Positions 10,003 to 63,645 of a DNA stretch of 64,000 bases are shown here, piece by piece; the first letter of the stretch is position 1, and the number at the start of each line of letters is the position of its first letter. Under the pieces are notes generated by a model. The model saw only the letters and a program-made list of their open reading frames with translations, had not been told where the DNA came from and ran no database searches. The stretch is from positions 1-64,000 of the IMG/VR virus record IMGVR_UViG_3300033183_000491; one strand, given 5' to 3'. Both the position numbers and the translations under genes were made by a program.

Positions 10003-10039
10003 TACAAACCTTTCTAAAGTTTTTATATAAGTCTAATTA

Positions 10040-41807: not shown

Positions 41808-42230
41808 CTAATTATCAATATATGATGTAACTTCAATATTAGAAGATTCTAACATTTTAATTCCTGTTTCATCTCTATATCTTTCTTTGTAAACAACTTT
41901 TTTAATTCCACTATTTATTATAGCCATTGCACAGTTTTCACATGGGCTCAATGTTAAATACATAATTTTATCTTTTGGATTATTATAATCTAATTTTAAC
42001 AAAGCATTAATTTCAGCATGCAATAATCCACTGCAACCAGGTTCATCAGATTGAGGTACGTTTGACATTCCTGCTGCATTTCCATTATACCCTAAAGAAA
42101 GAACTTGTGTATTATCTGATGTAACTATTAATGATCCTACCTTAAAATTAGGATGATGACTTCTTTGTGATATTGTTTCTGCCATTGTCATCCAAACTTT
42201 ATCCCAGCTTGGCCTATTTATTTCTAACAC
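41808..42230 (-). CDS. dcd: dCMP deaminase
   Basis: RPSWD, VGSLIV, GYNG, LHAEINAL and TLSPCENCA. Confidence 0.92.
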   Translation of the reverse strand: MLEINRPSWDKVWMTMAETISQRSHHPNFKVGSLIVTSDNTQVLSLGYNGNAAGMSNVPQSDEPGCSGLLHAEINALLKLDYNNPKDKIMYLTLSPCENCAMAIINSGIKKVVYKERYRDETGIKMLESSNIEVTSYIDN

Positions 42231-42704: not shown

Positions 42705-43571
42705 TTCTTTTTTCCATGACGCGATTTTTCTTTCTAATTTTAACTTTTTTTCTTCTTCAAGGCAATCTTCAATTGTAATTCTATTCCAAGGGTAAACTTT
42801 TCCTGTATTTGTTTTTGCCTGAATTGTTTTTATTCCTTTTATAGAGTAAAGATATATCTTTGAGTCTTCTATAATAACGTTTCTTTTAAATCTTAATAAT
42901 TTAGGAGGTCTTCCCAAATCAGACATTTCTTGATCCTTATAAAGTAAATCTTTACTATCCCATGGTATGGCAAATTTAATCGCATCTTCTTTGTAAGGAG
43001 TTACGTAAGAATACTTTTTTAAGATACTAAACCTTTTTTGACTCCCATGATAAAATATTCTTTTGCTAATTTCAGGTATATAATACTGAGGTTTTACTTT
43101 AAACGGAATAAAAACTTCTATGTCGTTTATAGGTCTATCAATAAATTGTAAATCTTCTTTAGATTCATCTTCATACCAAACTTTATATGTATTAACAAAT
43201 CCTTGAATACCTTTTGAAAAAACAGTTTCTCCATTTAATGTCAAAGAAAATAAACATTTTTCAATTTCATGAGGTAAAAGTTTAAAATAATAAGTATACT
43301 CTTTTCTTTCTAAAATTTGATCTGGCCTGTGAGAGTTAGTAGCATTAAATAATGATGCTCTTACAAAAGAAGTATTTTTTTCATGATACGGAAAGTATTC
43401 TCTAACTTCAGACTCGATAATTTTTAATTTATCACCTTGATCTATATTATTATATCTTTTTGGCCTTAGACATTTTTTGTATTTTAAATCACTACAAACA
43501 AACCAAATATCAGAAGTCAAGAATTTTGCTCCTAAATCTTTTACTTCGAAAGGAACATTAATTTTTTTCAA
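42690..43571 (-). CDS. Hypothetical protein with C-terminal ADP-ribosyltransferase-like motif
   Basis: IFYHGS.....KKYSYVTP..EDAIKFA resembles Arr-type ARTs. Confidence 0.45.
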   Translation of the reverse strand: MKKINVPFEVKDLGAKFLTSDIWFVCSDLKYKKCLRPKRYNNIDQGDKLKIIESEVREYFPYHEKNTSFVRASLFNATNSHRPDQILERKEYTYYFKLLPHEIEKCLFSLTLNGETVFSKGIQGFVNTYKVWYEDESKEDLQFIDRPINDIEVFIPFKVKPQYYIPEISKRIFYHGSQKRFSILKKYSYVTPYKEDAIKFAIPWDSKDLLYKDQEMSDLGRPPKLLRFKRNVIIEDSKIYLYSIKGIKTIQAKTNTGKVYPWNRITIEDCLEEEKKLKLERKIASWKKELYFN

Positions 43572-44140
43572 ATATATCTCTCTTTAAAAGTAGTATAATG
43601 TTTAGCACATCTTGGTTCATACATTCCTTTTGATCCTATTCTCTCTTCAGCTGAAGCGTTGTTGATATCAAACATAGCTTCAGTAAAATATGCGTCTTGA
43701 TCACAGTCAGTACAAACAGCAGGACAAACTTCTATTCTTGTTGCCCAAGGCATCATATTTTTTATATTCTCAAAAGGTATCTCGTTTGCATCTAATTGAA
43801 TTGAAGACACTATTATATTAATACCTTTGCGATATAAAGAAATCAAAACAGAATCAATATCTTGAATCATAAAAGCCTCATCAACAGCTATAACTGTATT
43901 TGAGTTAAACATTTCTTCATTAACATAACATAAAATCTCTTCTGCATGATTAATACAAAACGCTGGATAAGAAGCTCCAGTATGAGTACTAATCGATTCT
44001 TTTGTATATCTATTGTCTCTCTTAGCTTTAAAAGCAAGAACATTTCGTCCTTTATATAAAGATCGATCGATGTCCGACATTAACTTTGTTGTTTTTGACC
44101 CAAACATTGGTCCTGTATATATTGTAAATTGAGGATTCAT
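43568..44140 (-). CDS. tdk: Thymidine kinase (type II)
   Basis: GPMFGSKTT, AVDEA, C..C..DAYFT and YEPRCAKH. Confidence 0.93.
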   Translation of the reverse strand: MNPQFTIYTGPMFGSKTTKLMSDIDRSLYKGRNVLAFKAKRDNRYTKESISTHTGASYPAFCINHAEEILCYVNEEMFNSNTVIAVDEAFMIQDIDSVLISLYRKGINIIVSSIQLDANEIPFENIKNMMPWATRIEVCPAVCTDCDQDAYFTEAMFDINNASAEERIGSKGMYEPRCAKHYTTFKERYI

Positions 44141-44154
44141 ATTGTTTCCTTGAA

Positions 44155-45039
44155 CTAAATAAATGCAGATCTTATATGAATATTTAATTCAATATCGACA
44201 TCTTTAGGTAAAGACATTTCTTTAGCAGATTTTATACTAAGTATTTTTAAGAATTGATAATCACACCACAAATCCTTAGATACATTAGATTGAGTTAATG
44301 TTGCTGAAACCTGTAGTTTATTTTTTCTCCAAAGAAAATGAATTAAATTTATATTTCCATCATTACAAATAAAGAATCTTTTACTGTCATGTTTTTGTGG
44401 AAATCCAATATCATTAATCCCTGTAAATTCTCTAAATATTTTATTAAAAAATTCATTTTCAATATTTAGATAATAATTTGACCGACTTGGATGATACATT
44501 ATAGTATAATCAATAGTATTTTTATCGATTACTTCAGAAGTTCTAATATCAATTAGTTCATTATTTCCACTATTGATTACCAAAGACTTGATCAATTCAT
44601 CAGTTGGTATATCATTTAAAGAATTAATAAAATTAATAGATTTTTCAACATTCTCTTCTAAAGAATCATCTTCAAGTAAAAGAACATTAGGATAATTTCC
44701 TAAATTATATTTACAAAGTTTTTCATAATGACTCCTTACCTGAAGTATACTTTTTTCATCTTGGATTTCATCTCCTCTTATTTTATACCTTTCTAAGATT
44801 GTTTTCTCACTCGGGAGCAAAACAATATATAAAATATCTAATCTTTTAAGTTCATTAATGATTTTATCATACCACTTAGATTCTATTCCACGATTATACA
44901 TTTTAGAATAAACAATCATTGACATACAACTTCTATCTTGTATGTTATAAACATAATTTGTTTTCTTGTGGATTTCATTAAACAAAGTTGATTTTCCTGC
45001 ACAATCAGGACCTTCAATAATAATATGAGAAAAACGCAA
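44155..45039 (-). CDS. dNMP (dTMP) kinase-like domain fused to a degenerate thymidylate-synthase-like domain
   Basis: IIIEGPDCAGKST, QDRS and RGDE; C-terminus IHFLWRKNKLQVSATLTQSN resembles the ThyA QF...L...RSxD strand without its catalytic residues. Confidence 0.65.
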   Translation of the reverse strand: MRFSHIIIEGPDCAGKSTLFNEIHKKTNYVYNIQDRSCMSMIVYSKMYNRGIESKWYDKIINELKRLDILYIVLLPSEKTILERYKIRGDEIQDEKSILQVRSHYEKLCKYNLGNYPNVLLLEDDSLEENVEKSINFINSLNDIPTDELIKSLVINSGNNELIDIRTSEVIDKNTIDYTIMYHPSRSNYYLNIENEFFNKIFREFTGINDIGFPQKHDSKRFFICNDGNINLIHFLWRKNKLQVSATLTQSNVSKDLWCDYQFLKILSIKSAKEMSLPKDVDIELNIHIRSAFI

Positions 45040-46209: not shown

Positions 46210-46240
46210 TTAATCAAACTTGTTAAAATAATTAATCAAA
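46197..46240. repeat. Exact 22-bp tandem duplication CTTGTTAAAATAATTAATCAAA
   Basis: Copies at 46197-46218 and 46219-46240 span the convergent stops. Confidence 0.9.
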
Positions 46241-47308
46241 AGCATTAATCTTTTTAAGCTTAGCAAGATTTGAAGACATACCCCACCCTACATCATTCTT
46301 CACGTCAGCAAGCCAAGTACTAAACTCAATATCATCATCAAGATTACCCCATACTCTTAACCAACCACTACGATTATCTGAATCGACACATTTCCAACGC
46401 ATAAATGCTTTACCATTTTTTGTTGTTTTTCTAATAACTTCAGTCACGGTAAACCATCCGATTCCACGATCACCTGGATTAATATCAAAAACACTACTAA
46501 TTTGCTTCTGTTTTAACTTTTTAAGAAGACTAGGTGGAAACAATAAGTCATCATTTGCGTCGTTACTGAGTTCAAAATAATTTTTAATTTTTTCTGATCT
46601 TTTCCAGTCAGACACAATTTTATATTTTGATAATAAATCTTCGACGATAGGTGTTAATTCCTCACCTTTTTTAAGGGCGCGTTTAATAGCTGTCTTAGTC
46701 ATTCCAAATCTTCCCTTTTTAAGTAATACATAGTTATCGAGAATTAAATCATGGAGTTGCTTATGATTATCAAGTTTATCGTCTTTAAATTCACTGAGAG
46801 ATTTAAATGCTTCCATCTTTGTTAGGGATGAAAAAGCTGTTTTATTCATCTTTGAATGCTTCCATTCTCCTTCTTCATTATAAAATAGATCTTCTAAATT
46901 ATTGTATGGTCTATTTGCAAATATTTCTTCAACAGCTTTATCACCTACTCCTTTAAGAGACGTTAAAGGTGGAACAAAAGCTTTCAAATCTTCAGAATAT
47001 TCCCATTCTGAACCAGAGTGATTTACATCAATTGCTGAAATGTCATATCCTAATGCTTTTATTTCAGCAATAACTTTTGACATACCTTTAGGGCTGCCAT
47101 TTTCAGATTGTAAAACTGTTGCTAACCATTCTGTTTCGTAGTGTGTGTGTAACCATGCAGCGTAATAAGAATCAATTGCATATGAAACAGCGTGAGAGTT
47201 AGATTGCAAAATACCATTACTTAAGTAATATTGATGATCATGATGTGAAACTTCTAGATCATACGTTTGTTGCTTACCAGTAAATTCAATTGATAAAATA
47301 CGAGGCAT
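46232..47308 (-). CDS. dnaE: DNA polymerase III alpha, C-terminal half (IntC + extein)
   Basis: The 37-aa IntC is followed by SHAVSY, IDVNHS, LTSLKGVG.KAVEEI (HhH), and the OB fold KTTKNGKAFM. Confidence 0.93.
   Translation of the reverse strand: MPRILSIEFTGKQQTYDLEVSHHDHQYYLSNGILQSNSHAVSYAIDSYYAAWLHTHYETEWLATVLQSENGSPKGMSKVIAEIKALGYDISAIDVNHSGSEWEYSEDLKAFVPPLTSLKGVGDKAVEEIFANRPYNNLEDLFYNEEGEWKHSKMNKTAFSSLTKMEAFKSLSEFKDDKLDNHKQLHDLILDNYVLLKKGRFGMTKTAIKRALKKGEELTPIVEDLLSKYKIVSDWKRSEKIKNYFELSNDANDDLLFPPSLLKKLKQKQISSVFDINPGDRGIGWFTVTEVIRKTTKNGKAFMRWKCVDSDNRSGWLRVWGNLDDDIEFSTWLADVKNDVGWGMSSNLAKLKKINAFD
47198..47308 (-). mobile_element. Split intein C-fragment (37 aa)
   Basis: MPRILSIEFTGKQQTYDLEVSHHDHQYYLSNGILQSN|S: block F YDLEV, terminal Asn, +1 Ser. 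Confidence 0.92.
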
Positions 47309-47330
47309 TATAAACCTTTCTTTTTAATTT

Positions 47331-47359
47331 ATTGTACATAATTAATTTTTTGTTTACAC
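47331..47359 (-). promoter_or_regulatory. Promoter GTGTAA-N17-TACAAT for dnaE-C
   Basis: The -35 box coincides with the endonuclease's last codon and stop (GTG TAA). Confidence 0.65.
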
Positions 47360-48340
47360 ATAAGACTTTCCAAATAACCATAATCCTCTTGTTTTATTAA
47401 GAATAATACTTTCTATTTTGTCTAATGTTTCTTTATTAAACGTACCATTTTCTTTATATTCATATTCATCATGAGAAATCCTAATTACAGTCCAACCTTC
47501 TTCTATTAAGACTTCATTTAATTCTTTGTCTTTTTTTGTAACTTCACTAAGATTTCCTTTTTTCTTAAACACGTCTTTAAAATGATGTATACCGTCAAAT
47601 TCAATAACTATTTTATTTTCTAATGACATAATATCAATCTGTCTAGTGTTTGTCTTAGTTGATAAAAACTTTCCTGTTCTTTTAAGTGTTTGATTTCTTT
47701 TAAAAGTATTAGGAAAGTTTTTATCAACAATGTTAAATAAATCACCTTCAGGTTTAGACTGCCAAGATTTATGCATAACTGAGGTGCATTTTTTATAAAA
47801 TTCTCCCGGGTTATTCTTTCGCCATTCTGCAAGTCTATTTGATCTTTCTTTTTGGATATCTTTCCTACTTGAAGTTTTTTTAGCAGTCCTCGAAGATCTT
47901 TCTCTAAATTCTTGCGTTTTGTTTAAATTAGAAAGATTTTTTCTTCTTGATTCTCTAGCAAACTCTGAATTCATAATTCCTTTAGAAATAGATTTTCCTA
48001 ATTTTTCAATGTATTCTGAAAGATCCTCGCCTTTTTCTTTTTTTCTAGATATCCATGCTCCGTTTTTCTTTCCTGACATTGAATATTTATTTTTAGATTT
48101 TTCACACATCGCTAAGCCATATTTTAATTCATATTCTTCTTTACTTAAATTATGATTTTTAATATGTAATTTTATATTTTTTCTTACAAATCCACAAATT
48201 TGACATTTTACATAATCAATATTTTCTTTGTAATTTTCTAATATAAATTTACATTTTTCTTGATGGCTTTTTAATGTCGATTCTTTTATATAAGATTTTC
48301 CACACACACAATCGAAAGATCTTCTTGAATTATCAACCAT
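47354..48340 (-). mobile_element. Free-standing homing endonuclease (Zn fingers + Vsr/EDxHD-like nuclease) between the dnaE halves
   Basis: CVCGK...HQEKC, CQICG...H; SKPE, QIDI, IEFDGIHH, KDKELN and GWTVIRI. Confidence 0.88.
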
Positions 48341-51258
48341 AATGGAAGCATCCTTCCATCTTCAACTCTAAACTTGTGATGCATTGTACATTCAACACTT
48401 TTATCATTTTCCAGCGTAATCTTGAATGTTGGAACTTCTCCATGATCATGGTTTGCCAAAACCTGTGTAAATATATCTTCCTTTTTTTCTTCATCTCTTG
48501 ACTTAACGTAAACTCCAGGGACAACATCTTTAATCTCTTTCGTAGATAAATAATTTCCTTCGTGATCATAAGTATCTATTAAAGTATTAAATAGTAAACT
48601 TTTATTGAAGCCGTAAACAGCGAAACCTTCTATCTCTTCCCAAAGTTTTCTTGATATGTGTTCAGGAACATCATTAATTTCTTTTGCGCCTTTAATAAAC
48701 TTTTCTCTTGCAATTGTTTTTTCATCTTTTTTATTTCCCATAGTTGCAAGATTGTTTTTAACAAGTGTTTTTCTTAACTTGTCAGCTTCACCAGGGTCAA
48801 AACCAGATAGTTTTTGTGCAAGAAGCATAAATTGCTCTTGAAAAACAACATAAGAGAAAGTTGGTCCTAAAACTTCTTCAATAATTGGATGGTCATATTT
48901 AATCTGGTCAGCATTTTGTTTAGATTTAACATATTTCTTGTGAACGTTAGCTTTAAGAGGTCCTGGTCGATAAATTGCTGTAAGTGCAGCTAGTTCTTCA
49001 ATATTCTCTGGTTTTGCTTCTAGAGAGAAGTTTCTTGCGCCAGAATTTGTAAATTGAAATATTCCTACAAATCTTCCATCGTGATATACATGTTTCCAAA
49101 CCTCTTGATCATTTTGGTCGTGAAATCTACAGTTAAGATGTTTGTCAAAAAATTCTTTTGCATCTGAAAAAGTTGGGTTTTTATTGCCTTGTTTTTTCAA
49201 GATTTTATAGATACAATTTTCAATGTCTTTTAGTAATGATAACCCCAAGAAATCAAACTTAATAAATCCATTATCTTCTAGATTTCTAAAGTTTAATCCT
49301 TCTGACCAAGGAGTTTGTAATTCGCCACGAACACCGACAATAGGCATTGTTGTTTCTAAATGTTCTGGATCAGCTACAAGAACTCCTCCTGCGTGACGTC
49401 CAATTGCTCTATTTTGCATAAACAAAGAAGCAATATGCGTTTCTACTTCAGGATACCTTTCCATAAAGTCTTTATATTCAGACGAATATTTTTTACAATC
49501 TTCATGTTTAAGAACAAACACAGATTTTTCTTGATCATCACCTTTAGCCATTTTCATGACTTGTTCTTGAAGAGGTCCAGTAACTTTATTAACTTCATCA
49601 AAAGGAATATCGTAAAATTTTGAAATATCTTTAACTAGAGATTTAAGTTTAAGAGTATTAAAATTTGAAACAGGAATAACAGCATCATTACCATATAATT
49701 CTTTTGCTGCGTTAATTAATTCATCACGATCACCTGCATCCGTATCAATGTCAGGCCAACTAACTCTATGTCGCCCTAAAAATCTAGCCCAAAGAAGATC
49801 GTATGGCAAAGGATCAACTTGCGTAATACCTAACAAATAATTAACTAAAGATCCCGCACCTGAGCCTCTTCCTGGACCAAGTAATGTTTTCTTTTCAGCA
49901 CGTTTAAATATTTCATACATCGTAATAAAATAAGCTTCATGTCCAAGATATTTTATATCTGAAAGTTCTTCTTTAGCTCTTTCAACATATTCTTTATTCG
50001 TATGAAGATTATGTTCGATAAGAGATTCTTTAACTAAAGAAGACAAATGCTGAAATGGTGTTTTGTTTGGTACGTTAATTGTTGGAAGTTTAACTCCTGT
50101 ATCAATCCATGTATCTTCAAACTCATTCCAAACAATATCGTGAGTTCTATTAATAGCATCACTAACAAGTTGCTCATTACCTTTATAAAAATCATATAAT
50201 GGATATGAATCTAAAAATTCATCCCACATTTGTGATGCATTCTTTGGATATAATTCGCATTTAAGGTCTTCAAACTCAGGTAAAGTAAGATTGTCTCTTT
50301 TACCTAACCATCCAAGTTTTTTATATAGTTCTCTTGCTTGCCATTTTTCATTTGAAGGATAATGCGAATCTGCTGTACAGATAAGTGGAATACCTGTTAA
50401 CTTGTGATGTTCAATAAGATAGTCATTAACAGTATGCTGTTTTTCTAATTTATTAAATTGAAGTTCTAATTTAAAATTATTTTCGCCAACGCAAGAAACA
50501 AATCTATCTGTTAGGTTTAATAATTCTTTTTGAATTTGCTCGCGAGATTGATTATGTACTTCACCTCTTAGAATACGATTACTAAAAAGTCCGCCAAGAC
50601 ATGCGGTTGATATATGTAATCCTTCACCATGTTCTTGAAGCATTTGAAAATCAATACGAGGATATCTATAAAACCCGTATTTATAAGATTTTTTAACTAA
50701 AGTAAATAAATTGTGAAGACCTTTTTGGTTTCTTGCAGTTACGACAAGATGATAGCGTCGTTTCCATTCGTCTTTAAGAATATCTACGTTTTTTGTTTCG
50801 TCTTCGTCCTCGACAACTAAACCACCACTTTCATCATCTGCATCAATGTCAATTTTCTCTTTAGACTTCTTTTCAGCTGCAGCAGCTGTCTTAGCATCTT
50901 GAATAGCTTGTTTATGTGCGGCATAATCTTCTTTCCATTGCTGAAGAGATGGAACAAAATAAAATTCAACACCATAAATTTGTCTAAATTTTCTTCCAGA
51001 CTTTTGCATTCTAACTGCATGAGATCGTGCATGCGCAAGTCCATTACCATTACCATGATCAGTTAATGCCCATGCATCCATACCTTGAGATTCTGATATT
51101 ACAAAATCAATGTGGTCTGAAGGATATCCTAATCCATCAAATGTAGATACCTAGGAGAAGGTTGAATGGGCATGCAAACCAACGAATCTGTCGGGTCTAA
51201 GCATATCAAGTTCAACCTTCTCTAGGTACCTCCTTTCTGTTTTAAATGTATTATTCAT
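48286..51258 (-). CDS. dnaE: DNA polymerase III alpha, N-terminal half (PHP + polymerase + IntN), with in-frame TAG at 51151-51153
   Basis: An ATG at 51258 (or 51204) is in frame with the 931-aa ORF; FVGLHAHSTFS-TAG-VS-TFDG, LTDHG, GVE, TADSHY, GRGSGAGSL, WPDIDTD, FDFLGL and YGFNK. Confidence 0.9.
48289..48600 (-). mobile_element. Split intein N-fragment (104 aa)
   Basis: Begins after YGFNK with Ser1 (SLLFNT); block B CTMHHKF; ends at a TAA. Confidence 0.9.
51145..51231 (-). other. 21-bp hairpin in dnaE mRNA enclosing the premature UAG
   Basis: Arms at 51211-51231 and 51145-51166: 12 bp, a bulged C, then 9 bp with one G-U pair; 44-nt loop. Confidence 0.9.
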
Positions 51259-57671: not shown

Positions 57672-57879
57672 GAAACTCCGATATTATTTTTGCATAAATT
57701 ATCAACTCAGAATCAATCTTCTGAATTTCTTTTCCATTAAGTAAATAAACATTAGTGATACCATTCCAGTAATCAGTTTTAATATCTAGAACTAAACAAA
57801 TATTTGGAGTACCTTCTATAAACTTGTCTTTTCTATAGTAAGAAATTAAACTTCCTTTTTTAAATCTCTTTTGATCCAA
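57661..57879 (-). CDS. Small SH3/KOW-like protein
   Basis: FKKGSLISY...CLVLDI. Confidence 0.55.
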   Translation of the reverse strand: MDQKRFKKGSLISYYRKDKFIEGTPNICLVLDIKTDYWNGITNVYLLNGKEIQKIDSELIIYAKIISEFHER

Positions 57880-58663
57880 AAGTTTGTCTTTCTTTTACCC
57901 AATGCGTAGTTCTTCCATCTAACGTTGTTTCTTTTAACACTGGTTTTCTATTGTAGTCATAGTTTTTTCCATATACAACGAATCCTTCTACAGCATTTCC
58001 AGATTCTCCATCAAAAGTATAATAACTTTGTATTGATGCACCTTGTTCTTGATATGACTTATTCATGACAAATCTTATTGCCTTATCTAGGGTGTTTAAA
58101 TTTTCTTCTGTTAAGTCTTTTATAAAAGAATGAGGATTTATACGTGAATACCATAAAGACTCTGCTTTAATATAATTTCCAACTCCAGAAATAATACTTT
58201 GATTCATTAATACCTCACAAATATTTTTATGATTATATTTTCTTAAACGAGAAATAAAATCGTTAGGAGGATTAGAAAGCATATCAGGACCAATCGACTT
58301 AAGTTTTTTTTCTAAGTCTAAAGGCGTCTTTATCTGAAAAGTTCCAAAGTTTCTAATGTCATTAAAATAAAGATTATCTCCATCTTTAAAAGATATCTCT
58401 ATTCTACTATGTTTTGTTTTAAATTTGTTCCAAGAACCTGTCATACCTAAAGTATTAAAAACTATAATTTTATCGATATCTATCCAAATAAACTTTCCTT
58501 TGCAATTAAAAGATTTGATTGTTTCACCTGACAGGGTTTCAATTTTTTCTATTGGTTTTTTAACATATCTGCCACTTAAAATTTCAACTTTGTCAATTGT
58601 TTTTTCTTTATAAAAAGAATTTAACTTGTCAACAAATAATTTAACTTCTGGAGCTTCTGGCAT
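57860..58663 (-). CDS. mutM: Fpg/Nei DNA glycosylase with zincless finger
   Basis: MPEAPEV, KGKF, LGMTG, DIRNFG, H2TH motif LMNQSIISGVGNYIKAESL and GRTTHWV. Confidence 0.92.
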   Translation of the reverse strand: MPEAPEVKLFVDKLNSFYKEKTIDKVEILSGRYVKKPIEKIETLSGETIKSFNCKGKFIWIDIDKIIVFNTLGMTGSWNKFKTKHSRIEISFKDGDNLYFNDIRNFGTFQIKTPLDLEKKLKSIGPDMLSNPPNDFISRLRKYNHKNICEVLMNQSIISGVGNYIKAESLWYSRINPHSFIKDLTEENLNTLDKAIRFVMNKSYQEQGASIQSYYTFDGESGNAVEGFVVYGKNYDYNRKPVLKETTLDGRTTHWVKERQTFGSKEI

Positions 58664-58665
58664 TT

Positions 58666-58878
58666 TTAATCCTTTAGAATAGTTCTATTGATTTCCGGAA
58701 CATCATTTTCTGTATTGGCAGTTTTTGATTCTTCAACACCTTCTTTAGGTAATGTATTATCATGAATCTTATCAGCTAGTTCTGGTTTTCCAAACCATTG
58801 TAGGATTTGCATTAATGGATGAGCAACAATATTATGAAAAGCATAGCTTTTAATAAACTTTTCGTATTTAAGATTCAA
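58666..58878 (-). CDS. Hypothetical protein
   Basis: HNIVAHP...HDNTLP; GAGGTG SD. Confidence 0.6.
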   Translation of the reverse strand: MNLKYEKFIKSYAFHNIVAHPLMQILQWFGKPELADKIHDNTLPKEGVEESKTANTENDVPEINRTILKD

Positions 58879-58886
58879 GTATCACC

Positions 58887-59336
58887 TCATTCGATAGCAT
58901 CTGCATAAGGTTCAATAGGTAATTCTCCTGACTCAATAGCTCTATCTAAATAATCTTCTAGTTCTTCGAAGGATGTACATACCTTAATACCGCTTCTTGC
59001 AAGCATTAGATTAAACTTAGCTCCCGAAGGAAGTCCTGCACAGAAATATACAATTGGTCGTCCAAAAGCAAAAGCATATCCGGCTTCCCAAATAGTTCCA
59101 ATATCTTTGTCACGAGTATTAACTATAAGAAAGTCAGATGTCTTAATATGATGAAGGTTACCTTCAAATGTTTCATCTTGAACTTCTTTAGGAGCGTTTG
59201 GCGGACAAATAAAGATTCGTCGAGGTGATGCAAGCTCAAAGTGTTCTGCGCGATCGTCAAAAATCTTTTCAAGCTGTGTAAGCTCTGCATCTTGTGTTGG
59301 GTTAAACCATCCGCTAGCTAGGTAAATCTTTCTCAT
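58887..59336 (-). CDS. Nucleoside 2-deoxyribosyltransferase / nucleotide N-glycosidase-like protein
   Basis: KIYLASGWF, SDFLIV and DIGTIWEAGYA. Confidence 0.82.
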   Translation of the reverse strand: MRKIYLASGWFNPTQDAELTQLEKIFDDRAEHFELASPRRIFICPPNAPKEVQDETFEGNLHHIKTSDFLIVNTRDKDIGTIWEAGYAFAFGRPIVYFCAGLPSGAKFNLMLARSGIKVCTSFEELEDYLDRAIESGELPIEPYADAIE

Positions 59337-59400
59337 TAAAATGTTCCTTTTGTAAATAAATTTTATATTTTTTGTTTGTTTTTATTAGAGGTTATATTCG

Positions 59401-60372
59401 TTAAAATTCATCAGTTAGCTTCTGGCGAATATCGTTTACAATTTCAACATCTTCTCTCCACATTCGAGTAAAGATTTTTTCTTGTCCTGATTTATTACCG
59501 TTAATCTCCTCTCTTCTACACTGATAAATTGAATCATTTTCATTAAATTCAAAAAGATCATTCTTAGGCTCAGGATGATATAAGTTTGTTCCTTTCGATG
59601 TATAAGATCCATCAGGTAGTTTCACTCTAAATGTTCGGACATAATGCATGTCAGGTTTATCAAAGTCAAGACATGTTGAAACTTCAGGAATAGCTTGACA
59701 TACGAGTGTAGCAATTCTAGTAGCAATAATATTATCAACTTCAGGTTGAATTTGAACATCTTGTCGCTGTTTAATAAGGCCAATTAGATCTTTTAGATTA
59801 AATCTTGCAACATAAAATGTTTCAATAGACTTTGGGAGAATAACACGTGCATCCATAAGGGAAACTAATCTTGAGTCAACCATGTCTGAATATAGTTGTT
59901 TTGCTGCAGCTGCAACTTCAATAAATCTGTGATGAAAGCTAGAATTTTCAATTGACTCAGGAACTAAAATATTGTCATTTCTAAGATCTCGATCTCCTGT
60001 ACATTGAGCTGCAAATGATCCTGCCCTATGTCTGATTAGATGTGTAACAGTTTGTGTGTCAATCCCACTGATTTTAAATGTAAACCCTAAACATTCCATA
60101 GGTGTTGGAAGAGCTCTAAAGTTTAAGACATCTTGAAGATTTTCAGATTTCTCTTGTGGTGAAGCATTTTCAAAAGGTGTTTGATCTGGTGTGTCATCCC
60201 ACGTTGCTTTAGTCATATGCCAAGCAATTCTTTGTGCTTGTTCTCTTGTCGGAGCATCAATAACTTCAATTTTAAGAGACTCTAGATTGTTAATGTAATT
60301 TGTTACAGGTACTTGATTAAATTTAAGATCCATAGGAAGAGTGATAGGCTCTAAAGTATTATTAATTGGCAA
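59401..60372 (-). CDS. Divergent flavin-dependent thymidylate synthase (ThyX) paralog
   Basis: FTFKISGI, HLIRHRAGSFAAQC and DARVILP; the motif Ser is replaced by Cys. Confidence 0.78.
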   Translation of the reverse strand: MPINNTLEPITLPMDLKFNQVPVTNYINNLESLKIEVIDAPTREQAQRIAWHMTKATWDDTPDQTPFENASPQEKSENLQDVLNFRALPTPMECLGFTFKISGIDTQTVTHLIRHRAGSFAAQCTGDRDLRNDNILVPESIENSSFHHRFIEVAAAAKQLYSDMVDSRLVSLMDARVILPKSIETFYVARFNLKDLIGLIKQRQDVQIQPEVDNIIATRIATLVCQAIPEVSTCLDFDKPDMHYVRTFRVKLPDGSYTSKGTNLYHPEPKNDLFEFNENDSIYQCRREEINGNKSGQEKIFTRMWREDVEIVNDIRQKLTDEF

Positions 60373-60399
60373 ATTTTTTCTCCTTGTTATTTACCATTT

Positions 60400-60428
60400 A
60401 TTATAATTTTTTTTTGTATTATTTACAC
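60400..60428 (-). promoter_or_regulatory. Promoter GTGTAA-N17-TATAAT
   Basis: Upstream of the ThyX-like/NDT operon. Confidence 0.75.
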
Positions 60429-60437
60429 AAAATGAGT

Positions 60438-61091
60438 TTAAATATTTTTTATAATTTGTCTAATCAAATCTTTATTATCTTTGCATATTCTGTTTGATTG
60501 ACAAAGATAGTCTAAAGAGTCTTCTGTTTTAAGTCTCTTAAGAAAACTATATGTTCTTGTTATTTCATAGTCACTATCAATTTCTGCAATAACAGAGTCA
60601 TAATCGTGAATATCTAAATTCAAGATGTTTCTATTAATAGCATATTGGATTTCTCTAACTAGATTAAGAAATATATTAATTTTAAAATCGTTATAATTTA
60701 TTACATTTAAGTTAACTGATGATGAATATTCTATTATTCCTTCGTCACCTAAATTATTTTTTAAAAAATATAATTTACACGATTCATTTTCGCATAAAAA
60801 ATATTTTTTTGAATTTATAATACATAATTCTATTTCAATAGAAAAATCTTCGCAGTAGTTAATAGAATGCTGAAAGTTGTAGTGATATTTTTGGTCAAAT
60901 ATATGATTAAAATTACTAGTAACAGTCATAAAACATATACCTGGATCAATTACAATAGTTATATTCCCATTATTAATTAATCCAATTGAGTATATTAAAT
61001 CATTTTCTAAAAGATTCCATATCTGATTGATGTATTCATAAGATCTAAAATTAGGATTTTTATATAAATTTAGATCTTCATGAAAAAACAT
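60438..61091 (-). CDS. Hypothetical protein
   Basis: ORF track. Confidence 0.55.
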   Translation of the reverse strand: MFFHEDLNLYKNPNFRSYEYINQIWNLLENDLIYSIGLINNGNITIVIDPGICFMTVTSNFNHIFDQKYHYNFQHSINYCEDFSIEIELCIINSKKYFLCENESCKLYFLKNNLGDEGIIEYSSSVNLNVINYNDFKINIFLNLVREIQYAINRNILNLDIHDYDSVIAEIDSDYEITRTYSFLKRLKTEDSLDYLCQSNRICKDNKDLIRQIIKNI

Positions 61092-61092
61092 T

Positions 61093-61467
61093 TTAATAGC
61101 CTTTTTGTAATCTCCTTCTAATTATGTCATCTTTTACATTAAAGGCATTATAAAATTCATCAACATTAACACCCATTAAAATCATTAGTGAAAAGAAATA
61201 ATTAAATGCATCGACTATTTCTTCTAGAAATTCTTCTCTATTAATCTCAGGCATTTCTGTTTCTCTATGAGGCTTCCAATTCTTAAGATGTTGTAAAGCT
61301 TCAAACATTTCTTCAACGCCTTTTAAAGCCGTTTCTCTTAGTATGTTTTGACTTGATTTATCGCTAATGTCTACAGGCCAGTTATTAGGATAAGAATCAG
61401 GAAATTTTTCCTGAATTAGAGACATAAACTGTTCTCTTTTATTAAAAATATTTTCTAACTTGTCCAA
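61093..61467 (-). CDS. MazG / dimeric dUTPase-like all-alpha NTP pyrophosphatase
   Basis: EEMFEAL..LKNWKPH...EEIVDAFNY. Confidence 0.8.
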   Translation of the reverse strand: MDKLENIFNKREQFMSLIQEKFPDSYPNNWPVDISDKSSQNILRETALKGVEEMFEALQHLKNWKPHRETEMPEINREEFLEEIVDAFNYFFSLMILMGVNVDEFYNAFNVKDDIIRRRLQKGY

Positions 61468-61698
61468 TTAGTCACCTTGTTGTGTGTCTTGAGGTTGCGA
61501 TTGAAGTGCTTGATTATCTAACATTTTTTTGATTTGTTCTTCGAATACATCAGAATATTCTTGATTTATTCTAATCTTATCATCTTCGCCAATTTCAAAC
61601 TGAGCCATCCTAAGATGATCAACAATATCAGTTCCAGTTAAAATAGCAATTTGAATTAGTTTTGCAACGTGTGCAATTGATGAATCATGTAGTACCAA
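61468..61698 (-). CDS. Hypothetical protein
   Basis: TTG start with AGGAG SD. Confidence 0.6.
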   Translation of the reverse strand: MVLHDSSIAHVAKLIQIAILTGTDIVDHLRMAQFEIGEDDKIRINQEYSDVFEEQIKKMLDNQALQSQPQDTQQGD

Positions 61699-61709
61699 AA
61701 TTTTCTCCT

Positions 61710-62081
61710 TTAAATTATAATTGGTGATCTTTCGATTTTTTTATTAATCGCGTCAGTATCGTGTTCTAAAACTTTTATCATAGATACTCCATCAATAGTC
61801 TTTAAAGACTTAAGAACTGTCATAAATTTGTTTTTAGAATCAACGAACTTTTCAATATAAGAAACATTCATTTCTATTATTCTATGTCCATAAGAAGAAA
61901 CTATATCAGATATAGGTCGAGTTTGTCTAACTGTGACTATTCCTGGTAAAGCTCTCATGTCTGTCATTATATCGAGAACAGTAGGGTCTTCTCTTTCTTC
62001 GATTTTTATTCTGCATCTAATAAGCATATTGACAAGATCATCATGTCTTTCTAATAATATTTGTTCTTTTTTGTTAGTCAT
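61710..62081 (-). CDS. Hypothetical protein (ferredoxin/ACT-like alpha-beta pattern)
   Basis: ORF track; GAGG SD. Confidence 0.55.
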   Translation of the reverse strand: MTNKKEQILLERHDDLVNMLIRCRIKIEEREDPTVLDIMTDMRALPGIVTVRQTRPISDIVSSYGHRIIEMNVSYIEKFVDSKNKFMTVLKSLKTIDGVSMIKVLEHDTDAINKKIERSPIII

Positions 62082-62120
62082 TTTAACCTCACAGATATAT
62101 ACTTATAAATATGATAACAA

Positions 62121-62825
62121 TTAACTTCTGTTAATAAAAGAATTAACTGTTACAGGCCATAATTCAGAAATTATATTTAACATTTCGTTTGCTAATTGTT
62201 GAATTTCCCATTGTGCACCTTCATGAGTTCTAAGTTCAATAAACTTAAGAATATTATTTAAATTAGCTGTAGCATAATATTCAGTATATAAATTTTGTGG
62301 AAGAATTCCTCTTGCTTGCTCTCTACAAACACCCACTGACAGAAGAGTATCAAATAATTTTAATGAATCTTTATGATAATTTTTAATAGCTTCTGAAACT
62401 GTAACTGTTAACGGAGTTGAGCTATAATCTGTATTAAACGAAATTTCTGGATTAATTAAATCTTCAATGTTAGACGATTGTCTATTGGATTTATGTTGAG
62501 TCCTAAAAGACTCAGGTTGATAGAATTCTAAATTAGAATCTGTATATCTTCGGCTGATTTCGTTATAAGACCATGTTCTATGCCTATGATGTTGAGATCT
62601 AACAAAAAGTGGGACTTTAATTCTAAAGGTTGCAATATTATGCTCAAGAGTTGAAGTATGTTTATGATTAATAAGATAATTGATTAGTTTTTCATCTTTT
62701 TGGTCTAAAGAGTCTTTATGAACTCCGAAAGAAACTCTTGCTGAATTTACTACGGTGATATCTTCTCCGACATGTTGTACTAATTCAATTTTACCAATAT
62801 TATCATCATATAAATAATTTGTCAT
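62121..62825 (-). CDS. thyX: Flavin-dependent thymidylate synthase
   Basis: VNSARVSF, HTSTLEH, RHRTWSYNEISRRY, EQARGILP and LR....AQWEI. Confidence 0.95.
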   Translation of the reverse strand: MTNYLYDDNIGKIELVQHVGEDITVVNSARVSFGVHKDSLDQKDEKLINYLINHKHTSTLEHNIATFRIKVPLFVRSQHHRHRTWSYNEISRRYTDSNLEFYQPESFRTQHKSNRQSSNIEDLINPEISFNTDYSSTPLTVTVSEAIKNYHKDSLKLFDTLLSVGVCREQARGILPQNLYTEYYATANLNNILKFIELRTHEGAQWEIQQLANEMLNIISELWPVTVNSFINRS

Positions 62826-62847
62826 TAAATTTCCTCTGTTTTAATGA

Positions 62848-62877
62848 ATTATAAATTTATAATTAAACCAATTACAC
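62848..62877 (-). promoter_or_regulatory. Promoter GTGTAA-N18-TATAAT
   Basis: Upstream of thyX. Confidence 0.75.
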
Positions 62878-62880
62878 TTA

Positions 62881-63645
62881 TTAATCTTCACTATCAGTGT
62901 CATTTAATGGTTTTTCAAAGTGATAAAATGCTCCACCTGTATGTCCATCATGGATCAAAGTTGCAAAGCATCTAGCAACAGGACCTCCAAGTTTATCTTT
63001 TAGAGCTTTGTAGTAAGGATGGTTTTTAATTTCTTTCGGGATTCTCCACGAAGAAGAAGTTGAATACCCCGTATCGTACTTAATAAAATTAAATCCTGTA
63101 TTTGTACCTAGTTCGATAAAGTCTTCGTGAACTGGAAAATTTACGTGTCCAATTTTATGCTCTTTTTCAGGGGAATGAAACTGAGTATCTTTTGTGTTCA
63201 TTGGAAATCCTAATACCATTTTTCCGCCAGGACGAAGTATTCGATAAAGCTCTTTCATAATATAAGGATAGTTATGATCTTCAATATGCTCAAAAACTTC
63301 AGATGAAACCATAATATCAAACATTTCATCGTCATAAGGAAGTCCTGTTGTAATATCATGCTGTTTTAGCTGAAATTTGTTACTTTGTTTACTCCATGCC
63401 ATATCGATGTATTTTTGTTGATAATCAATACCATAATACTCTGTAAAGACAAAAAGACTTTTCATAAAGGTCCATAAACGTCCATTATAACATCCGATAT
63501 CTAAGAGTTTAGGTTGATTTTTTCCATCATATCCATTCTCTACACACCATTTCCTTACAGCTTCAACTAGGTAATTCTGTGAAAAAACAATAAATTGACA
63601 ATCAATAAGAGTTTGAGGATGTGATTTTTTTTGGATAGCAACCAT
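62881..63645 (-). CDS. Class I SAM-dependent methyltransferase
   Basis: LLDIGCYNG, YGID, HDI, FDIMVSSEVFEHI and LRPGG. Confidence 0.88.
   Translation of the reverse strand: MVAIQKKSHPQTLIDCQFIVFSQNYLVEAVRKWCVENGYDGKNQPKLLDIGCYNGRLWTFMKSLFVFTEYYGIDYQQKYIDMAWSKQSNKFQLKQHDITTGLPYDDEMFDIMVSSEVFEHIEDHNYPYIMKELYRILRPGGKMVLGFPMNTKDTQFHSPEKEHKIGHVNFPVHEDFIELGTNTGFNFIKYDTGYSTSSSWRIPKEIKNHPYYKALKDKLGGPVARCFATLIHDGHTGGAFYHFEKPLNDTDSED

Follow-up and report, generated by a model that had tools for sequence, protein, structure and literature searches.

Why should a phage genome encode two members of the flavin-dependent thymidylate synthase (ThyX) family, one of which carries a rewritten active-site loop? 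We addressed this question for a window of 64,000 nucleotides, the first 64 kb of a complete 239.5-kb marine jumbo phage genome (IMG/VR record IMGVR_UViG_3300033183_000491). The original prediction held that a canonical ThyX and a second copy with Ser replaced by Cys are clustered with NDT-like, MazG-like, Fpg and SAM methyltransferase genes, and that together these form a candidate pathway for a modified nucleotide. All of the named open reading frames are present at the stated coordinates on the minus strand, and the observation itself is confirmed. The genes of the cluster are as follows.

57860–58663, minus strand: Fpg/Nei-family DNA glycosylase/AP lyase without a zinc finger.
58666–58878, minus strand: 70-aa ORF (phrog_36447) between Fpg and NDT.
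58887–59336, minus strand: NDT-type nucleoside 2'-deoxyribosyltransferase-like protein of 149 aa.
59401–60372, minus strand: divergent ThyX-fold protein of 323 aa, here termed ThyX-C.
60438–61091, minus strand: variable 217-aa ORF of unknown function between the MazG-like gene and ThyX-C.
61093–61467, minus strand: MazG/dimeric-dUTPase-like all-alpha NTP pyrophosphohydrolase of 124 aa.
61468–61698, minus strand: conserved 76-aa protein of unknown function.
62121–62825, minus strand: canonical FAD-dependent thymidylate synthase ThyX of 234 aa.
62881–63645, minus strand: class I SAM-dependent methyltransferase.

We first assigned these proteins to families by profile searches. The canonical ThyX, the presumed source of dTMP, matches PF02511 at 6.8e-49 and the TIGR02170 thyX equivalog model at 170 bits against a cut-off of 88, carries the motif RHRTWSYNEISRRY, and matches the solved ThyX 6J61 at 2e-40. 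ThyX-C matches PF02511 at 1.3e-18 but reaches only 47 bits on TIGR02170, and its motif reads RHRAGSFAAQCTGDR. The NDT-like protein matches PF05014 (2.5e-13) and phrog_7995 (1.6e-25), and the methyltransferase matches PF08241 (5e-18). The MazG-like protein matches phrog_12184 (1e-15), whereas its score on PF08761 (18.4 bits) lies below the Pfam cut-off of 22.9. The Fpg/Nei protein matches PF01149 (6e-21) and PF06831 (2e-14) but falls below the TIGR00577 cut-off (170 versus 203 bits); its N-terminal Pro2-Glu3 is present and its C-terminal part has no Cys pairs. The 70-aa ORF matches phrog_36447 at 1.1e-12, and the 76-aa and 217-aa proteins have no family hit. A search of the whole genome found exactly two Thy1 genes and no ThyA. 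The genes share one strand with short gaps and no terminator-like site in the intergenic gaps, but a promoter scan did not exceed shuffled controls, so that the co-transcription of ThyX-C with its neighbors, which had been asserted from the sequence, is plausible but not shown.

To define how ThyX-C departs from canonical ThyX, we aligned it to the T. maritima and M. tuberculosis enzymes. In T. maritima numbering, C124 falls on Ser88, G126 on Arg90, and D127 on Tyr91, such that the canonical S-x-R-Y loop reads C-T-G-D, and His53 is replaced by L88. The four nucleotide/flavin-binding arginines R78, R80, R147, and R174 are kept as R114, R116, R176, and R203. ThyX-C has about 45 extra N-terminal and about 90 extra C-terminal residues, both conserved and confidently folded in the AF2 model (pLDDT 95.7). 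The top Foldseek hits of this model are M. tuberculosis ThyX, PolB, and T. maritima ThyX. The altered residues matter in canonical ThyX, as S88A, R90A, and Y91A slow the dUMP-dependent step by up to more than 100-fold and mutation of Y91 slows flavin oxidation about 1000-fold (PMC8316439, PMC11940539), and in PolB the equivalent Arg binds pyrimidine O4 and the phosphate (PMC5003785).

ThyX-C is not a decaying paralog. It belongs to a large phage clade (135 clusters at 50% identity with E<1e-10), and in a tree it falls in a clade of 84 rows with SH support of 96; all C-G-D sequences form one clade with no S-x-R ThyX inside. Among 110 representative relatives, the residue at the S88 position is Cys in 62, that at R90 is Gly in 64 and Ala in 15, and that at Y91 is Asp or Glu in 77, whereas R78, R147, and R174 are kept in 106–108. 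The Cys emphasized in the original prediction is thus not universal in the clade, being replaced by Gly, Thr, Ala, or Ser in a dozen subclades, and the Asp that replaces Tyr91 is the better conserved change. The dN/dS of ThyX-C, about 0.09, is the lowest in the cluster, compared to about 0.42 for the 76-aa protein and about 0.43 for the 217-aa ORF. ThyX-C has also coexisted with canonical ThyX throughout this phage lineage: 16 of 20 lineage records carry both types, the four that do not are fragments of 18–53% completeness, and the ThyX-C copies of the lineage have diverged to 58% identity. In the complete 284-kb relative the two genes lie far apart, and a further genome (G035) also has both.

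Gene-neighborhood analysis, which had been proposed in advance as a means of examining the idea, allowed the partners of ThyX-C to be separated from its incidental neighbors. The NDT-like gene, the conserved downstream neighbor, is adjacent to ThyX-C in every related locus with enough flank (77 of 80) and is linked again in relatives of only 26–43% identity. The MazG-like gene is conserved upstream of ThyX-C in all related loci, and the 76-aa gene is always upstream of the MazG-like gene in this lineage (66 related loci). The 217-aa ORF is present in 36 of 80 related loci and absent in the others, the 70-aa ORF is present in 32, and Fpg is a variable neighbor, present in 43 loci at varying position. 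The methyltransferase was found only in the window and one other (L030) of the related loci that cover that position; it is not an ortholog of the methyltransferase next to ThyX-C in locus L099, and we regard it as accessory rather than as part of the conserved module.

The most specific partner lies outside the cluster and had been missed by the original prediction. The kinase and its surrounding nucleotide-metabolism genes are located as follows.

41808–42230, minus strand: dCMP deaminase (PF00383, 1.5e-23).
43568–44140, minus strand: thymidine kinase (PF00265, 1.8e-32), adjacent to the next gene.
44155–45039, minus strand: two-domain protein with an N-terminal YorR/dNK/Tmk-like nucleotide kinase (P-loop EGPDxxGKST) and a C-terminal ThyA-fold-like domain of about 145 aa that is degenerate in this copy.

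This protein is the homolog of the small kinase that sits beside ThyX-C in other phages, as shown by phmmer hits to the kinases next to ThyX-C in phage GR1 and in loci L005, L099, L101, and L102. Its profile hits are to YorR (2AXP, 6.7e-16) and to Tmk (2.6e-7), and its AF2 model (pLDDT 93.8) matches 3KB2 with a VIA Z of 14.9. The C-terminal domain, to which the kinase is fused in this lineage, gives Foldseek hits to 9IQU, the T4 dCMP hydroxymethylase, and TS, as well as a Z of 12 to MilA, and so resembles the phage dCMP hydroxylase, the T4 dCMP hydroxymethylase, and MilA, although a motif comparison showed that it has lost its catalytic-type residues. UDG-like domains are fused to the kinase in several loci.

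We then compared 12 dereplicated ThyX-C clusters with 24 other phage ThyX clusters. Within 5 kb, NDT occurs in 7/12 versus 1/24 (p = 6e-4), the YorR/Tmk-like kinase in 9/12 versus 2/24 (p = 1e-4), and either one in 12/12 versus 3/24 (p = 4e-7); further kinase forms that the first profile missed were also found. MazG-like genes, in contrast, are common next to any phage ThyX (8/12 versus 8/24, p = 0.06), and this link is not specific. The same kinase type (top hit 3KB2 YorR/Tmk) sits next to the proven 5hodCMP (5-hydroxy-dCMP) synthases of phages DLP3, RB69, and RL38J1 (PMC13326640, Table 1). Distant members are also linked to glycosyltransferases in three unrelated contexts: a TET-associated glycosyltransferase (PF20691, 1.2e-19) lies 0.9 kb downstream of ThyX-C in L102, with no TET gene in the locus; P0134 is a GT2-like::ThyX-C fusion; and phage GR1 has an annotated glycosyltransferase in the module. 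The genome studied here has no TAGT or GT2 glycosyltransferase.

The interpretation originally offered is therefore partly supported. A functional, specialized second ThyX with a family-wide conserved C-[TS]-G-D loop, rather than a duplicate, its genuine linkage to the NDT-like gene, and a wider context favoring a modified-nucleotide pathway are upheld, whereas the methyltransferase, Fpg, and a specific MazG link are not supported. The suggested kinship of the NDT-like protein with the nucleotide hydrolases MilB and DNPH1 is likewise not favored. Its best solved relative is the N-deoxyribosyltransferase 6EVS (E = 9.6e-12 over the full length), with DNPH1 only at E = 0.015. The catalytic Glu in D-x-G-T-x-W-E, the N-L-M motif, and a C-terminal [IV]-E are conserved among ThyX-C-linked copies, and the protein has Asp at −6 from the catalytic Glu and Asn in the NLM motif; DNPH1 has phosphate-binding serines at both positions, of which the Ser at −6 is visible in the rat DNPH1 alignment.

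We propose, with no more than moderate confidence, that ThyX-C is the catalytic core of a conserved phage module that makes a C5-modified pyrimidine deoxynucleotide other than dTMP, before replication, for incorporation into phage DNA. In this model, the MazG-like pyrophosphatase, a candidate supplier of the substrate, would turn a dNTP into a dNMP, ThyX-C would modify C5 of that dNMP as a flavoenzyme on the ThyX scaffold with its nucleotide-contacting loop rewritten from S-x-R-Y to C-[TS]-G-D, and the dedicated YorR/Tmk-like kinase would phosphorylate the non-canonical dNMP. The NDT-type enzyme would work beside this, exchanging or removing bases at the nucleoside level, either to salvage deoxyribose or to drain the competing canonical nucleoside, while the canonical ThyX goes on making dTMP. 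Our analysis establishes the fold, the conserved motif, purifying selection, the gene linkages, and the coexistence with canonical ThyX; the substrate and product are inferred only and untested. No biochemical or DNA-composition data exist for any member, and phage GR1 has been published without DNA analysis. The loss of the O4-binding Arg90 and the gain of a conserved Asp suit cytosine, and we lean slightly toward dCMP over dUMP. The glycosyltransferase links suit a hydroxymethyl or hydroxyl product, but methyl is not excluded. The roles of Cys124 as nucleophile and of Asp127 as acid or N4/N3 ligand are also inferred, and the replacement of Cys in a dozen subclades argues against an obligatory Cys nucleophile. 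Moreover, the NDT-like protein looks like a nucleoside enzyme, and its role in a nucleotide-level pathway is not explained.

The main rival, which we consider possible but less likely, is that ThyX-C is a genuine but divergent flavin-dependent thymidylate synthase that forms an ordinary dUTP to dUMP to dTMP to dTDP supply line with the MazG-like dUTPase and the Tmk-like kinase, and that in jumbo phages it is a second TS tuned to a different reductant, oxygen level, or timing. The ThyX fold and the retained arginines fit this view, as does the trio of dUTPase-like enzyme, ThyX-like enzyme, and Tmk-like kinase, which is also what an ordinary dTTP pathway looks like. In GR1 and in six complete small phage genomes, ThyX-C is the only thymidylate-synthase-superfamily gene, as expected of a normal phage TS. 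A basic residue recurs 1–4 positions after the Asp, which together with the retained arginines makes dUMP methylation chemically conceivable, and an Asp could replace Tyr91 as the general acid. A solved T. maritima S88C mutant exists (3G4C) and retains activity, and the phage genome is 72% A+T and needs much dTTP. However, Arg90 and Tyr91 are both lost family-wide although R90A and Y91A cripple canonical ThyX, and the score below the equivalog cut-off, the stable retention beside a canonical ThyX, the rarity of the NDT or kinase partners near other phage ThyX types, and the glycosyltransferase links all weigh against it.

We regard as unlikely a deoxyribose-salvage and base-exchange route at the nucleoside or base level, in which a nucleotidase makes deoxynucleosides, NDT swaps bases, and thymidine kinase plus the YorR-like kinase re-phosphorylate, while ThyX-C acts on a nucleoside, on a ribonucleotide as PolB does, or on a pyrimidine in a polymer as TrmFO does. 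The true-transferase residues of the NDT-like protein, the HD/YfbR-like 5'-deoxynucleotidases or NT5C in the module in GR1, L006, L099, L102, and L007, the thymidine kinase next to the kinase in the window, the UDG-like fusions, the changes at the phosphate-contacting Ser88 and Arg90, and the precedent of PolB for a substrate shift are compatible with it. Nevertheless, R147 and R78, which bind the nucleotide phosphate, are nearly invariant, no nucleic-acid-binding domain was detected, and the tight coupling to an NMP-type kinase and an NTP pyrophosphatase points to mononucleotides. Very unlikely, in our view, is a non-catalytic nucleotide- or flavin-binding subunit, such as a regulator or scaffold of a dNTP-synthesizing complex. 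Three catalytically important residues are replaced, and the degenerate ThyA-like domain of the partner kinase in this very genome shows that such domains are tolerated in the system, but the replacement motif is itself conserved across hundreds of clusters, dN/dS is the lowest in the cluster, and all flavin- and nucleotide-binding arginines are kept. Inteins and homing endonucleases have also invaded homologs, which is typical of essential catalytic genes.

Compared to canonical ThyX (T. maritima TM0449, M. tuberculosis Rv2754c), ThyX-C shares the fold (Foldseek E of about 1e-11, target-normalized TM up to 0.77), the Pfam Thy1 domain, the R-x-R motif, Arg147, and Arg174, but differs in the C-[TS]-G-D loop, the Leu at His53, the two extensions, the equivalog score, and the linkage to NDT and a kinase. 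PolB/SVIThyX2, the UMP/dUMP C5-methylases of polyoxin biosynthesis (PMC5003785), are likewise neofunctionalized ThyX paralogs that coexist with a housekeeping ThyX, with substrate choice governed by the same “substrate recognition peptide,” and 4P5B is a structural match at E = 1.2e-10. PolB, however, keeps E-x-S-x-R-Y and derives its specificity from two other loops, whereas ThyX-C replaces the peptide itself, is viral, and has no link to antibiotic clusters. The pathway logic matches that of T4-type pre-replicative pyrimidine modification (gp56 dCTPase, gp42 dCMP hydroxymethylase, gp1 dNMP kinase, and glucosyltransferases) and of the ThyA-homolog 5hodCMP synthase clusters of RB69, DLP3, and RL38J1 (PMC13326640), with an NTP pyrophosphatase, a thymidylate-synthase-superfamily modifier, and a dedicated nucleotide kinase, of the same type as in the 5hodC clusters, together with glycosyltransferases in some members; these phages also keep a normal TS. 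Here the modifier has the unrelated ThyX fold rather than the ThyA fold, no modified base has been detected, and an NDT-type enzyme is a regular partner, which the known systems lack. MilA/MilB (a TS-like hydroxymethylase with an NDT-fold nucleotide N-glycosidase) and DNPH1 (an hmdUMP hydrolase) offer the parallel of a C5-modifying pyrimidine enzyme paired with an NDT-superfamily protein, with the catalytic Glu conserved, but the phage protein is much closer to true nucleoside 2'-deoxyribosyltransferase than to DNPH1.

The virus record of which the window forms the beginning (G000, an IMG/VR record of 239,550 bp) has 141-bp direct terminal repeats and is estimated to be complete, with a G+C content of about 28%. 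The window encodes a DnaE-type polymerase, a GroEL-like chaperonin and an ATP-dependent ligase. A nucleotide search of the cluster against 50,697 phage records returned no match, and the DnaE polymerase likewise has no close cultured relative, whereas near-identical sequence occurs in marine, seawater and estuary metagenomes from 12 studies. The source is an uncultured marine jumbo phage. Its DnaE-type polymerase appears split (46232-51081, minus strand), with the PHP, pol III alpha and finger domains in 48286-51081, the HHH_6 part in 46232-47308, and a DUF559/endonuclease-like ORF (47354-48340) between them, which suggests a homing-endonuclease insertion.

The original prediction, that two ThyX paralogs are clustered here with NDT-like, Fpg, MazG-like and SAM methyltransferase genes, was correct as an observation. 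Every ORF that it named is present on the minus strand:

62121-62825, minus strand, canonical ThyX
59401-60372, minus strand, a second Thy1-domain protein, here called ThyX-C
58887-59336, minus strand, an NDT-family protein
57860-58663, minus strand, an Fpg/Nei protein
61093-61467, minus strand, a MazG-like protein
62881-63645, minus strand, a class I methyltransferase

The genome has two Thy1 genes and no ThyA. Co-transcription, which had also been proposed, is plausible from strand and spacing, although a promoter and terminator scan did not differ from shuffled sequence and was uninformative, and the sequencing runs found for this phage were DNA metagenomes kept as contigs, with no RNA run among them. 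The suggestion that the cluster is a modified-nucleotide pathway was supported only in part, as described below.

We compared both proteins with the curated models for FAD-dependent thymidylate synthase. The protein encoded at 62121-62825 is a textbook ThyX (PF02511, 6.8e-49; TIGR02170, 170.3 bits; 2e-40 to a solved ThyX). ThyX-C carries the Thy1 domain (PF02511, 1.3e-18), and its AlphaFold2 model matches 3GWC, 4P5B and 1O26, but it reaches only 47.2 bits on the TIGR02170 equivalog model against a cut-off of 87.9. Alignment to T. maritima and M. tuberculosis ThyX shows that the RHR and the first Ser of the ThyX motif RHRxxSxxxxSxRY are present, while Ser88, Arg90 and Tyr91 of the active-site loop are replaced by C124, G126 and D127, respectively. 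The arginines involved in flavin and dUMP binding and activation (Arg78, Arg80, Arg147 and Arg174) are retained as R114, R116, R176 and R203 and are kept in 103–108 of 110 relatives. We did not assay conversion of dUMP to dTMP with FAD, NADPH and CH2-THF or complementation of thyA. A change of His53 to Leu at first seemed diagnostic of ThyX-C, but this was dropped because many S-x-R phage ThyX also have Leu or Ile at that position.

ThyX-C is a member of a large and distinct clade. A word search found more than 1,000 relatives, of which the top 120 are at 83–97% identity and derive from ENA, JGI, Tara and Logan marine data, and an exhaustive search of 50%-identity representatives found 552 clusters at E≤1e-3 and 135 at E≤1e-10. 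In these, the canonical S-x-R-Y is replaced by C-[TS]-G-D, usually followed by x-D-x-R-H or by R/K. Among 110 representatives, the Ser88 position is Cys in 62, the Arg90 position is Gly in 64 and Ala in 15, and the Tyr91 position is Asp or Glu in 77, whereas Arg78, Arg147 and Arg174 are kept in 106–108. On a FastTree phylogeny with other phage ThyX types, which is a quick estimate rather than a bootstrapped tree, all 59 C-G-D sequences and their derived variants form one clade of 84 rows (SH-like support 96), with no S-x-R ThyX inside it. The Cys has been replaced several times within the clade, so the Gly/Ala-Asp pair is the more constant change. Another atypical group of untested function is formed by the Pbunavirus “ThyX” proteins (for example Pseudomonas phage crassa, locus L088, 6968-7885), which depart from the canonical loop in a different way (…QQETSRA…) and lack the NDT and kinase neighbours.

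The AlphaFold2 model of ThyX-C, built on 62 relatives, has a mean pLDDT of 95.7, with the N- and C-terminal extensions included in that confidence, and its best structural matches are M. tuberculosis ThyX, PolB and T. maritima ThyX. Within the phage lineage ThyX-C has the lowest dN/dS of the cluster, about 0.09 compared to 0.15 for canonical ThyX, although dS is near saturation and these ratios are approximate. Some homologs have been invaded by mobile elements: one (P0250, 700 aa) carries an intein with Hint/Intein_splicing domains, and another (P0151, 515 aa) carries an HNH/His-Me endonuclease domain.

The residues replaced in ThyX-C are important in canonical ThyX, where S88A, R90A and Y91A strongly slow the dUMP-triggered step and mutation of Y91 slows flavin oxidation about 1000-fold (PMC8316439, PMC11940539). 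In PolB the equivalent Glu, Ser, Arg and Tyr form the “substrate recognition peptide,” and the Arg binds pyrimidine O4 and the phosphate (PMC5003785). A family-wide, conserved replacement of this peptide therefore points to altered substrate recognition or chemistry and not to drift. Beyond this point we can only infer. An Asp in place of the O4-binding Arg/Tyr pair would suit the N4-amino/N3 face of cytosine, in parallel with the Asn-to-Asp switch that distinguishes dCMP-specific ThyA homologs; whether Cys124 or Asp127 faces the pyrimidine was not measured on the model. A Cys at the Ser88 position could act as a C6 nucleophile, and we first favoured Cys124 as an obligatory one, but its absence from several subclades weakens that idea.

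Analysis of the gene neighbourhood had been named in advance as a way of testing the proposed pathway, and we carried it out first within the phage's own lineage. Because no stretch of the 62-sequence alignment was conserved enough to serve as a search pattern, related loci were collected with subclade alignments, which yielded eighty IMG/VR loci with ThyX-C at 58–86% identity. The order u76 (a 76-residue protein), MazG-like, u217 (a 217-residue protein, not always present), ThyX-C, NDT is kept throughout, and NDT follows ThyX-C in every locus with downstream flank (77 of the 80). Fpg is present in about half of the loci and at varying positions. The methyltransferase occurs only in the window and one other locus, and is rejected as part of the module. 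Of 20 lineage records, 16 carry both canonical ThyX and ThyX-C, and the four with ThyX-C alone are fragments of 18–53% completeness; in the complete 284-kb relative the two genes lie far apart. Long-term retention of both genes argues against simple redundancy.

More distant relatives repeat the pattern. The cultured Geobacillus phage GR1 (locus L001; ThyX-C at 43% identity) has no other TS-like gene, and near ThyX-C it has NDT, an HD/YfbR-like nucleotidase, a glycosyltransferase, a small P-loop protein, a nitroreductase-family flavoprotein and a dUTPase. The flavoprotein (L001, 7286-7885; PF00881, 6.9e-24) lies immediately upstream of ThyX-C, with two thioredoxins nearby, and may be a dedicated flavin-reducing partner. 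Similar arrangements occur in the contigs L005, L006, L099, L102, L092 and L101. A small kinase with the thymidylate-kinase-type P-loop E-G-x-D-x-x-G-K-[ST]-T lies directly beside ThyX-C in GR1, L005, L099, L101 and L102, and has a homolog in the window at 44155-45039 (minus strand).

To measure the specificity of these links, we used a second scan with another subclade, which gave 80 more loci that split naturally into ThyX-C types and ordinary S-x-R ThyX types, the latter serving as controls. After dereplication at 50% identity, and requiring at least 5 kb of flank, NDT was found within 5 kb in 7/12 ThyX-C clusters compared to 1/24 other ThyX clusters (p = 6e-4), the kinase in 9/12 compared to 2/24 (p = 1e-4), either NDT or the kinase in 12/12 compared to 3/24 (p = 4e-7), and a MazG-like gene in 8/12 compared to 8/24 (p = 0.06). 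The control set came from the same pattern scan and is not a random sample of phage ThyX. Longer kinase forms missed by the first profile raise the kinase count further. Some of these (L092:8879-9754, L107:4564-5547, L108:11130-12017) carry a C-terminal UDG-superfamily-like domain (PF03167 at 19–23 bits, just under the cut-off), while L101 has a separate UDG gene (9899-10492, 38.5 bits) two genes downstream. Downstream of ThyX-C, the kinase and the UDG gene in L101 (11183-16460) lie two radical SAM proteins and a DHO_dh/4Fe-4S-like protein, which hints at further nucleobase chemistry.

A profile of the kinase family hits SPbeta YorR (2AXP/3KB2) at 6.7e-16 and thymidylate kinases at about 1e-6 to 1e-7. 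The AlphaFold2 model of the window protein (pLDDT 93.8) has two parts: an N-terminal YorR/dNK/Tmk-like domain (Z 14.9 to 3KB2), and a C-terminal half of about 145 residues that gives Foldseek matches to the phage HY126 dCMP hydroxylase, the T4 dCMP hydroxymethylase and thymidylate synthases, and Z 12 to MilA. In sister-clade phages (L073:16773-17681 and the relatives L074–L087) this predicted ThyA-fold domain keeps ThyA-like RR, Cys, R-S-x-D and His motifs, whereas in the window copy they are replaced, so this copy is degenerate. A kinase::TS-like fusion of this kind was not found in the literature searched. Weak ThyA-profile hits (25–32 bits), some with stops inside the match, lie immediately next to ThyX-C in three phages (G030:16207-16587, G031:22234-22443 and G033:79435-79836, the IMG/VR records behind loci L114, L115 and L117), and may be small ThyA-like ORFs comparable to the fused domain. 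The experimentally validated 5-hydroxy-dCMP clusters of phages DLP3, RB69 and RL38J1 each contain a “nucleotide kinase” next to the ThyA-homolog synthase, with YorR and thymidylate kinase as its best structural hits (PMC13326640, Table 1), and the ThyX-C partner is the same kind of kinase. A TS-superfamily modifying enzyme paired with a dedicated dNMP kinase characterizes pre-replicative pyrimidine hypermodification of the T4, 5hmdU and 5hodC type; here a ThyX-fold candidate and a YorR/Tmk-like kinase are linked, but with neither activity shown the pairing does not settle whether the module belongs to that type. Protein complexes were not modelled, as we claim no specific protein-protein contact.

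Glycosyltransferases occur in distant ThyX-C contexts. In L102 a TET-associated glycosyltransferase (TAGT; PF20691, 1.2e-19, above cut-off) lies 0.9 kb downstream of ThyX-C, with no TET/JBP hit recorded in the 17-kb locus; the Logan and ENA contigs (L099, L102 and others) were not searched for ThyA over their whole records, so absence of a TET or ThyA gene elsewhere in this phage is not proven. The homolog P0134 is a fusion of a GT2-like domain to ThyX-C (23.9 bits against a cut-off of 23.3), and GR1 has a depositor-annotated glycosyltransferase with no Pfam support. These links fit a hydroxyl-bearing product in those phages. The window genome itself has no TAGT or GT2 gene (PF20691 and PF00535 are absent), and neither LC-MS nor native-signal data on its DNA bases were available; the metagenome runs consist of assembled contigs, which cannot show modification or transcripts.

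The NDT-like protein, for which the original prediction had pointed to a family that includes the nucleotide hydrolase DNPH1, instead resembles nucleoside 2'-deoxyribosyltransferases. It scores 50.6 bits on PF05014 (cut-off 28.8), and its best solved relative is a bacterial N-deoxyribosyltransferase (6EVS, 9.6e-12, full length), whereas DNPH1 chains match only marginally (E 0.015–0.9). The catalytic Glu, the Asp six residues before it (D-x-G-T-x-W-E) and the Asn of the F-N-L-M motif are conserved in six ThyX-C-linked copies. In the Rcl/DNPH1-type nucleotide hydrolases the last two positions are serines, including the phosphate-binding Ser at −6, and the phage protein has neither. The protein therefore looks like a nucleoside-level enzyme. 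Together with the HD/NT5C nucleotidases seen in other modules and the thymidine kinase at 43568-44140, it suggests a nucleoside-level branch, for salvage or for removal of a canonical nucleoside, although its exact role is the least explained part of the module.

The evidence for the identity of two other neighbours is mixed. The MazG-like protein matches phrog_12184 (1e-15) and displays EExxE and EExxD motifs, but its scores on PF08761 (18.4 bits against 22.9) and PF01503 (16.7 bits against 21.3) fall below the cut-offs, which leaves its assignment to the MazG/dimeric dUTPase all-alpha pyrophosphohydrolases undecided. Similarly, the Fpg/Nei protein has the N-terminal domain and H2TH, but no zinc-finger Cys pattern, and scores 170 bits against the TIGR00577 cut-off of 203; this fits the zincless Nei-like variants without deciding its membership of the family. 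The genome also encodes a dCMP deaminase (41808-42230) and a ribonucleotide reductase just beyond the window, the large subunit of which matches in three pieces (G000, 67492-70118), one with an in-frame TAA, and which may be interrupted by an intron, an intein or an endonuclease. It has no Pfam-level thymidylate kinase. At 40587-41303 (minus strand), 26980-28611 (minus strand) and G000 230721-231026 (plus strand), the phage encodes an Fe/Mn superoxide dismutase C-terminal domain protein, the GroEL-like chaperonin and a second, weak cytidine/dCMP deaminase-like gene.

Taken together, the conserved rewriting of the recognition loop, the failure of the equivalog test, the stable coexistence with canonical ThyX, the partners found near only 3 of 24 other phage ThyX clusters, the kinase type shared with proven hypermodification clusters and the glycosyltransferase links favour a modified-nucleotide pathway, which we hold with moderate confidence. 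These features are results of the analysis; the substrate and product are inferred, and we lean slightly towards dCMP over dUMP, and towards hydroxymethyl or hydroxyl over methyl. That ThyX-C is an ordinary, if divergent, thymidylate synthase is less likely, but has in its support the retained arginines, the fact that a dUTPase-like enzyme, a TS-like enzyme and a Tmk-like kinase together describe dTTP synthesis, and the fact that ThyX-C is the only TS-superfamily gene in GR1 and in six complete small phage genomes. A salvage role or a substrate other than a dNMP is unlikely, and a non-catalytic role very unlikely.

In its broadest form, which we put forward only tentatively, ThyX-C would define the first ThyX-fold (intrinsically flavin-dependent) enzyme family dedicated to making a non-canonical pyrimidine deoxynucleotide, such as 5-hydroxymethyl-, 5-hydroxy- or 5-methyl-dCMP/dUMP, and together with an NDT-type enzyme and a YorR-like kinase it would form a previously unrecognised DNA-modification pathway, widespread in abundant marine jumbo phages and present in GR1. 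A second, unrelated scaffold for such chemistry would widen the known routes to modified DNA and would flag hundreds of uncultured phage lineages as candidates for non-canonical DNA, including an abundant marine, seawater and estuarine jumbo-phage group, which matters for how such phages escape restriction and CRISPR, for how well they are recovered by sequencing, and for enzyme tools. If ThyX-C instead proves to be a thymidylate synthase, it would show that Arg90 and Tyr91, held to be key ThyX residues, are dispensable in a natural enzyme. Either way, the label “thymidylate synthase ThyX” under which source databases list the family is unsafe, and phage GR1 offers an immediate experimental handle.

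Literature searches for ThyX homologs in base modification, and for the DNA of phage GR1, found no description of this clade. All characterised phage enzymes that make modified pyrimidine nucleotides before replication (5hmdC, 5hmdU, 5mdC, 5hodC) have the ThyA fold, and the known phage routes to these nucleotides use ThyA homologs (PMC8989533, PMC13326640). The module described here is unproven biochemically. Compared to those routes, it would represent a known pathway logic on a different enzyme scaffold, with an added NDT partner.
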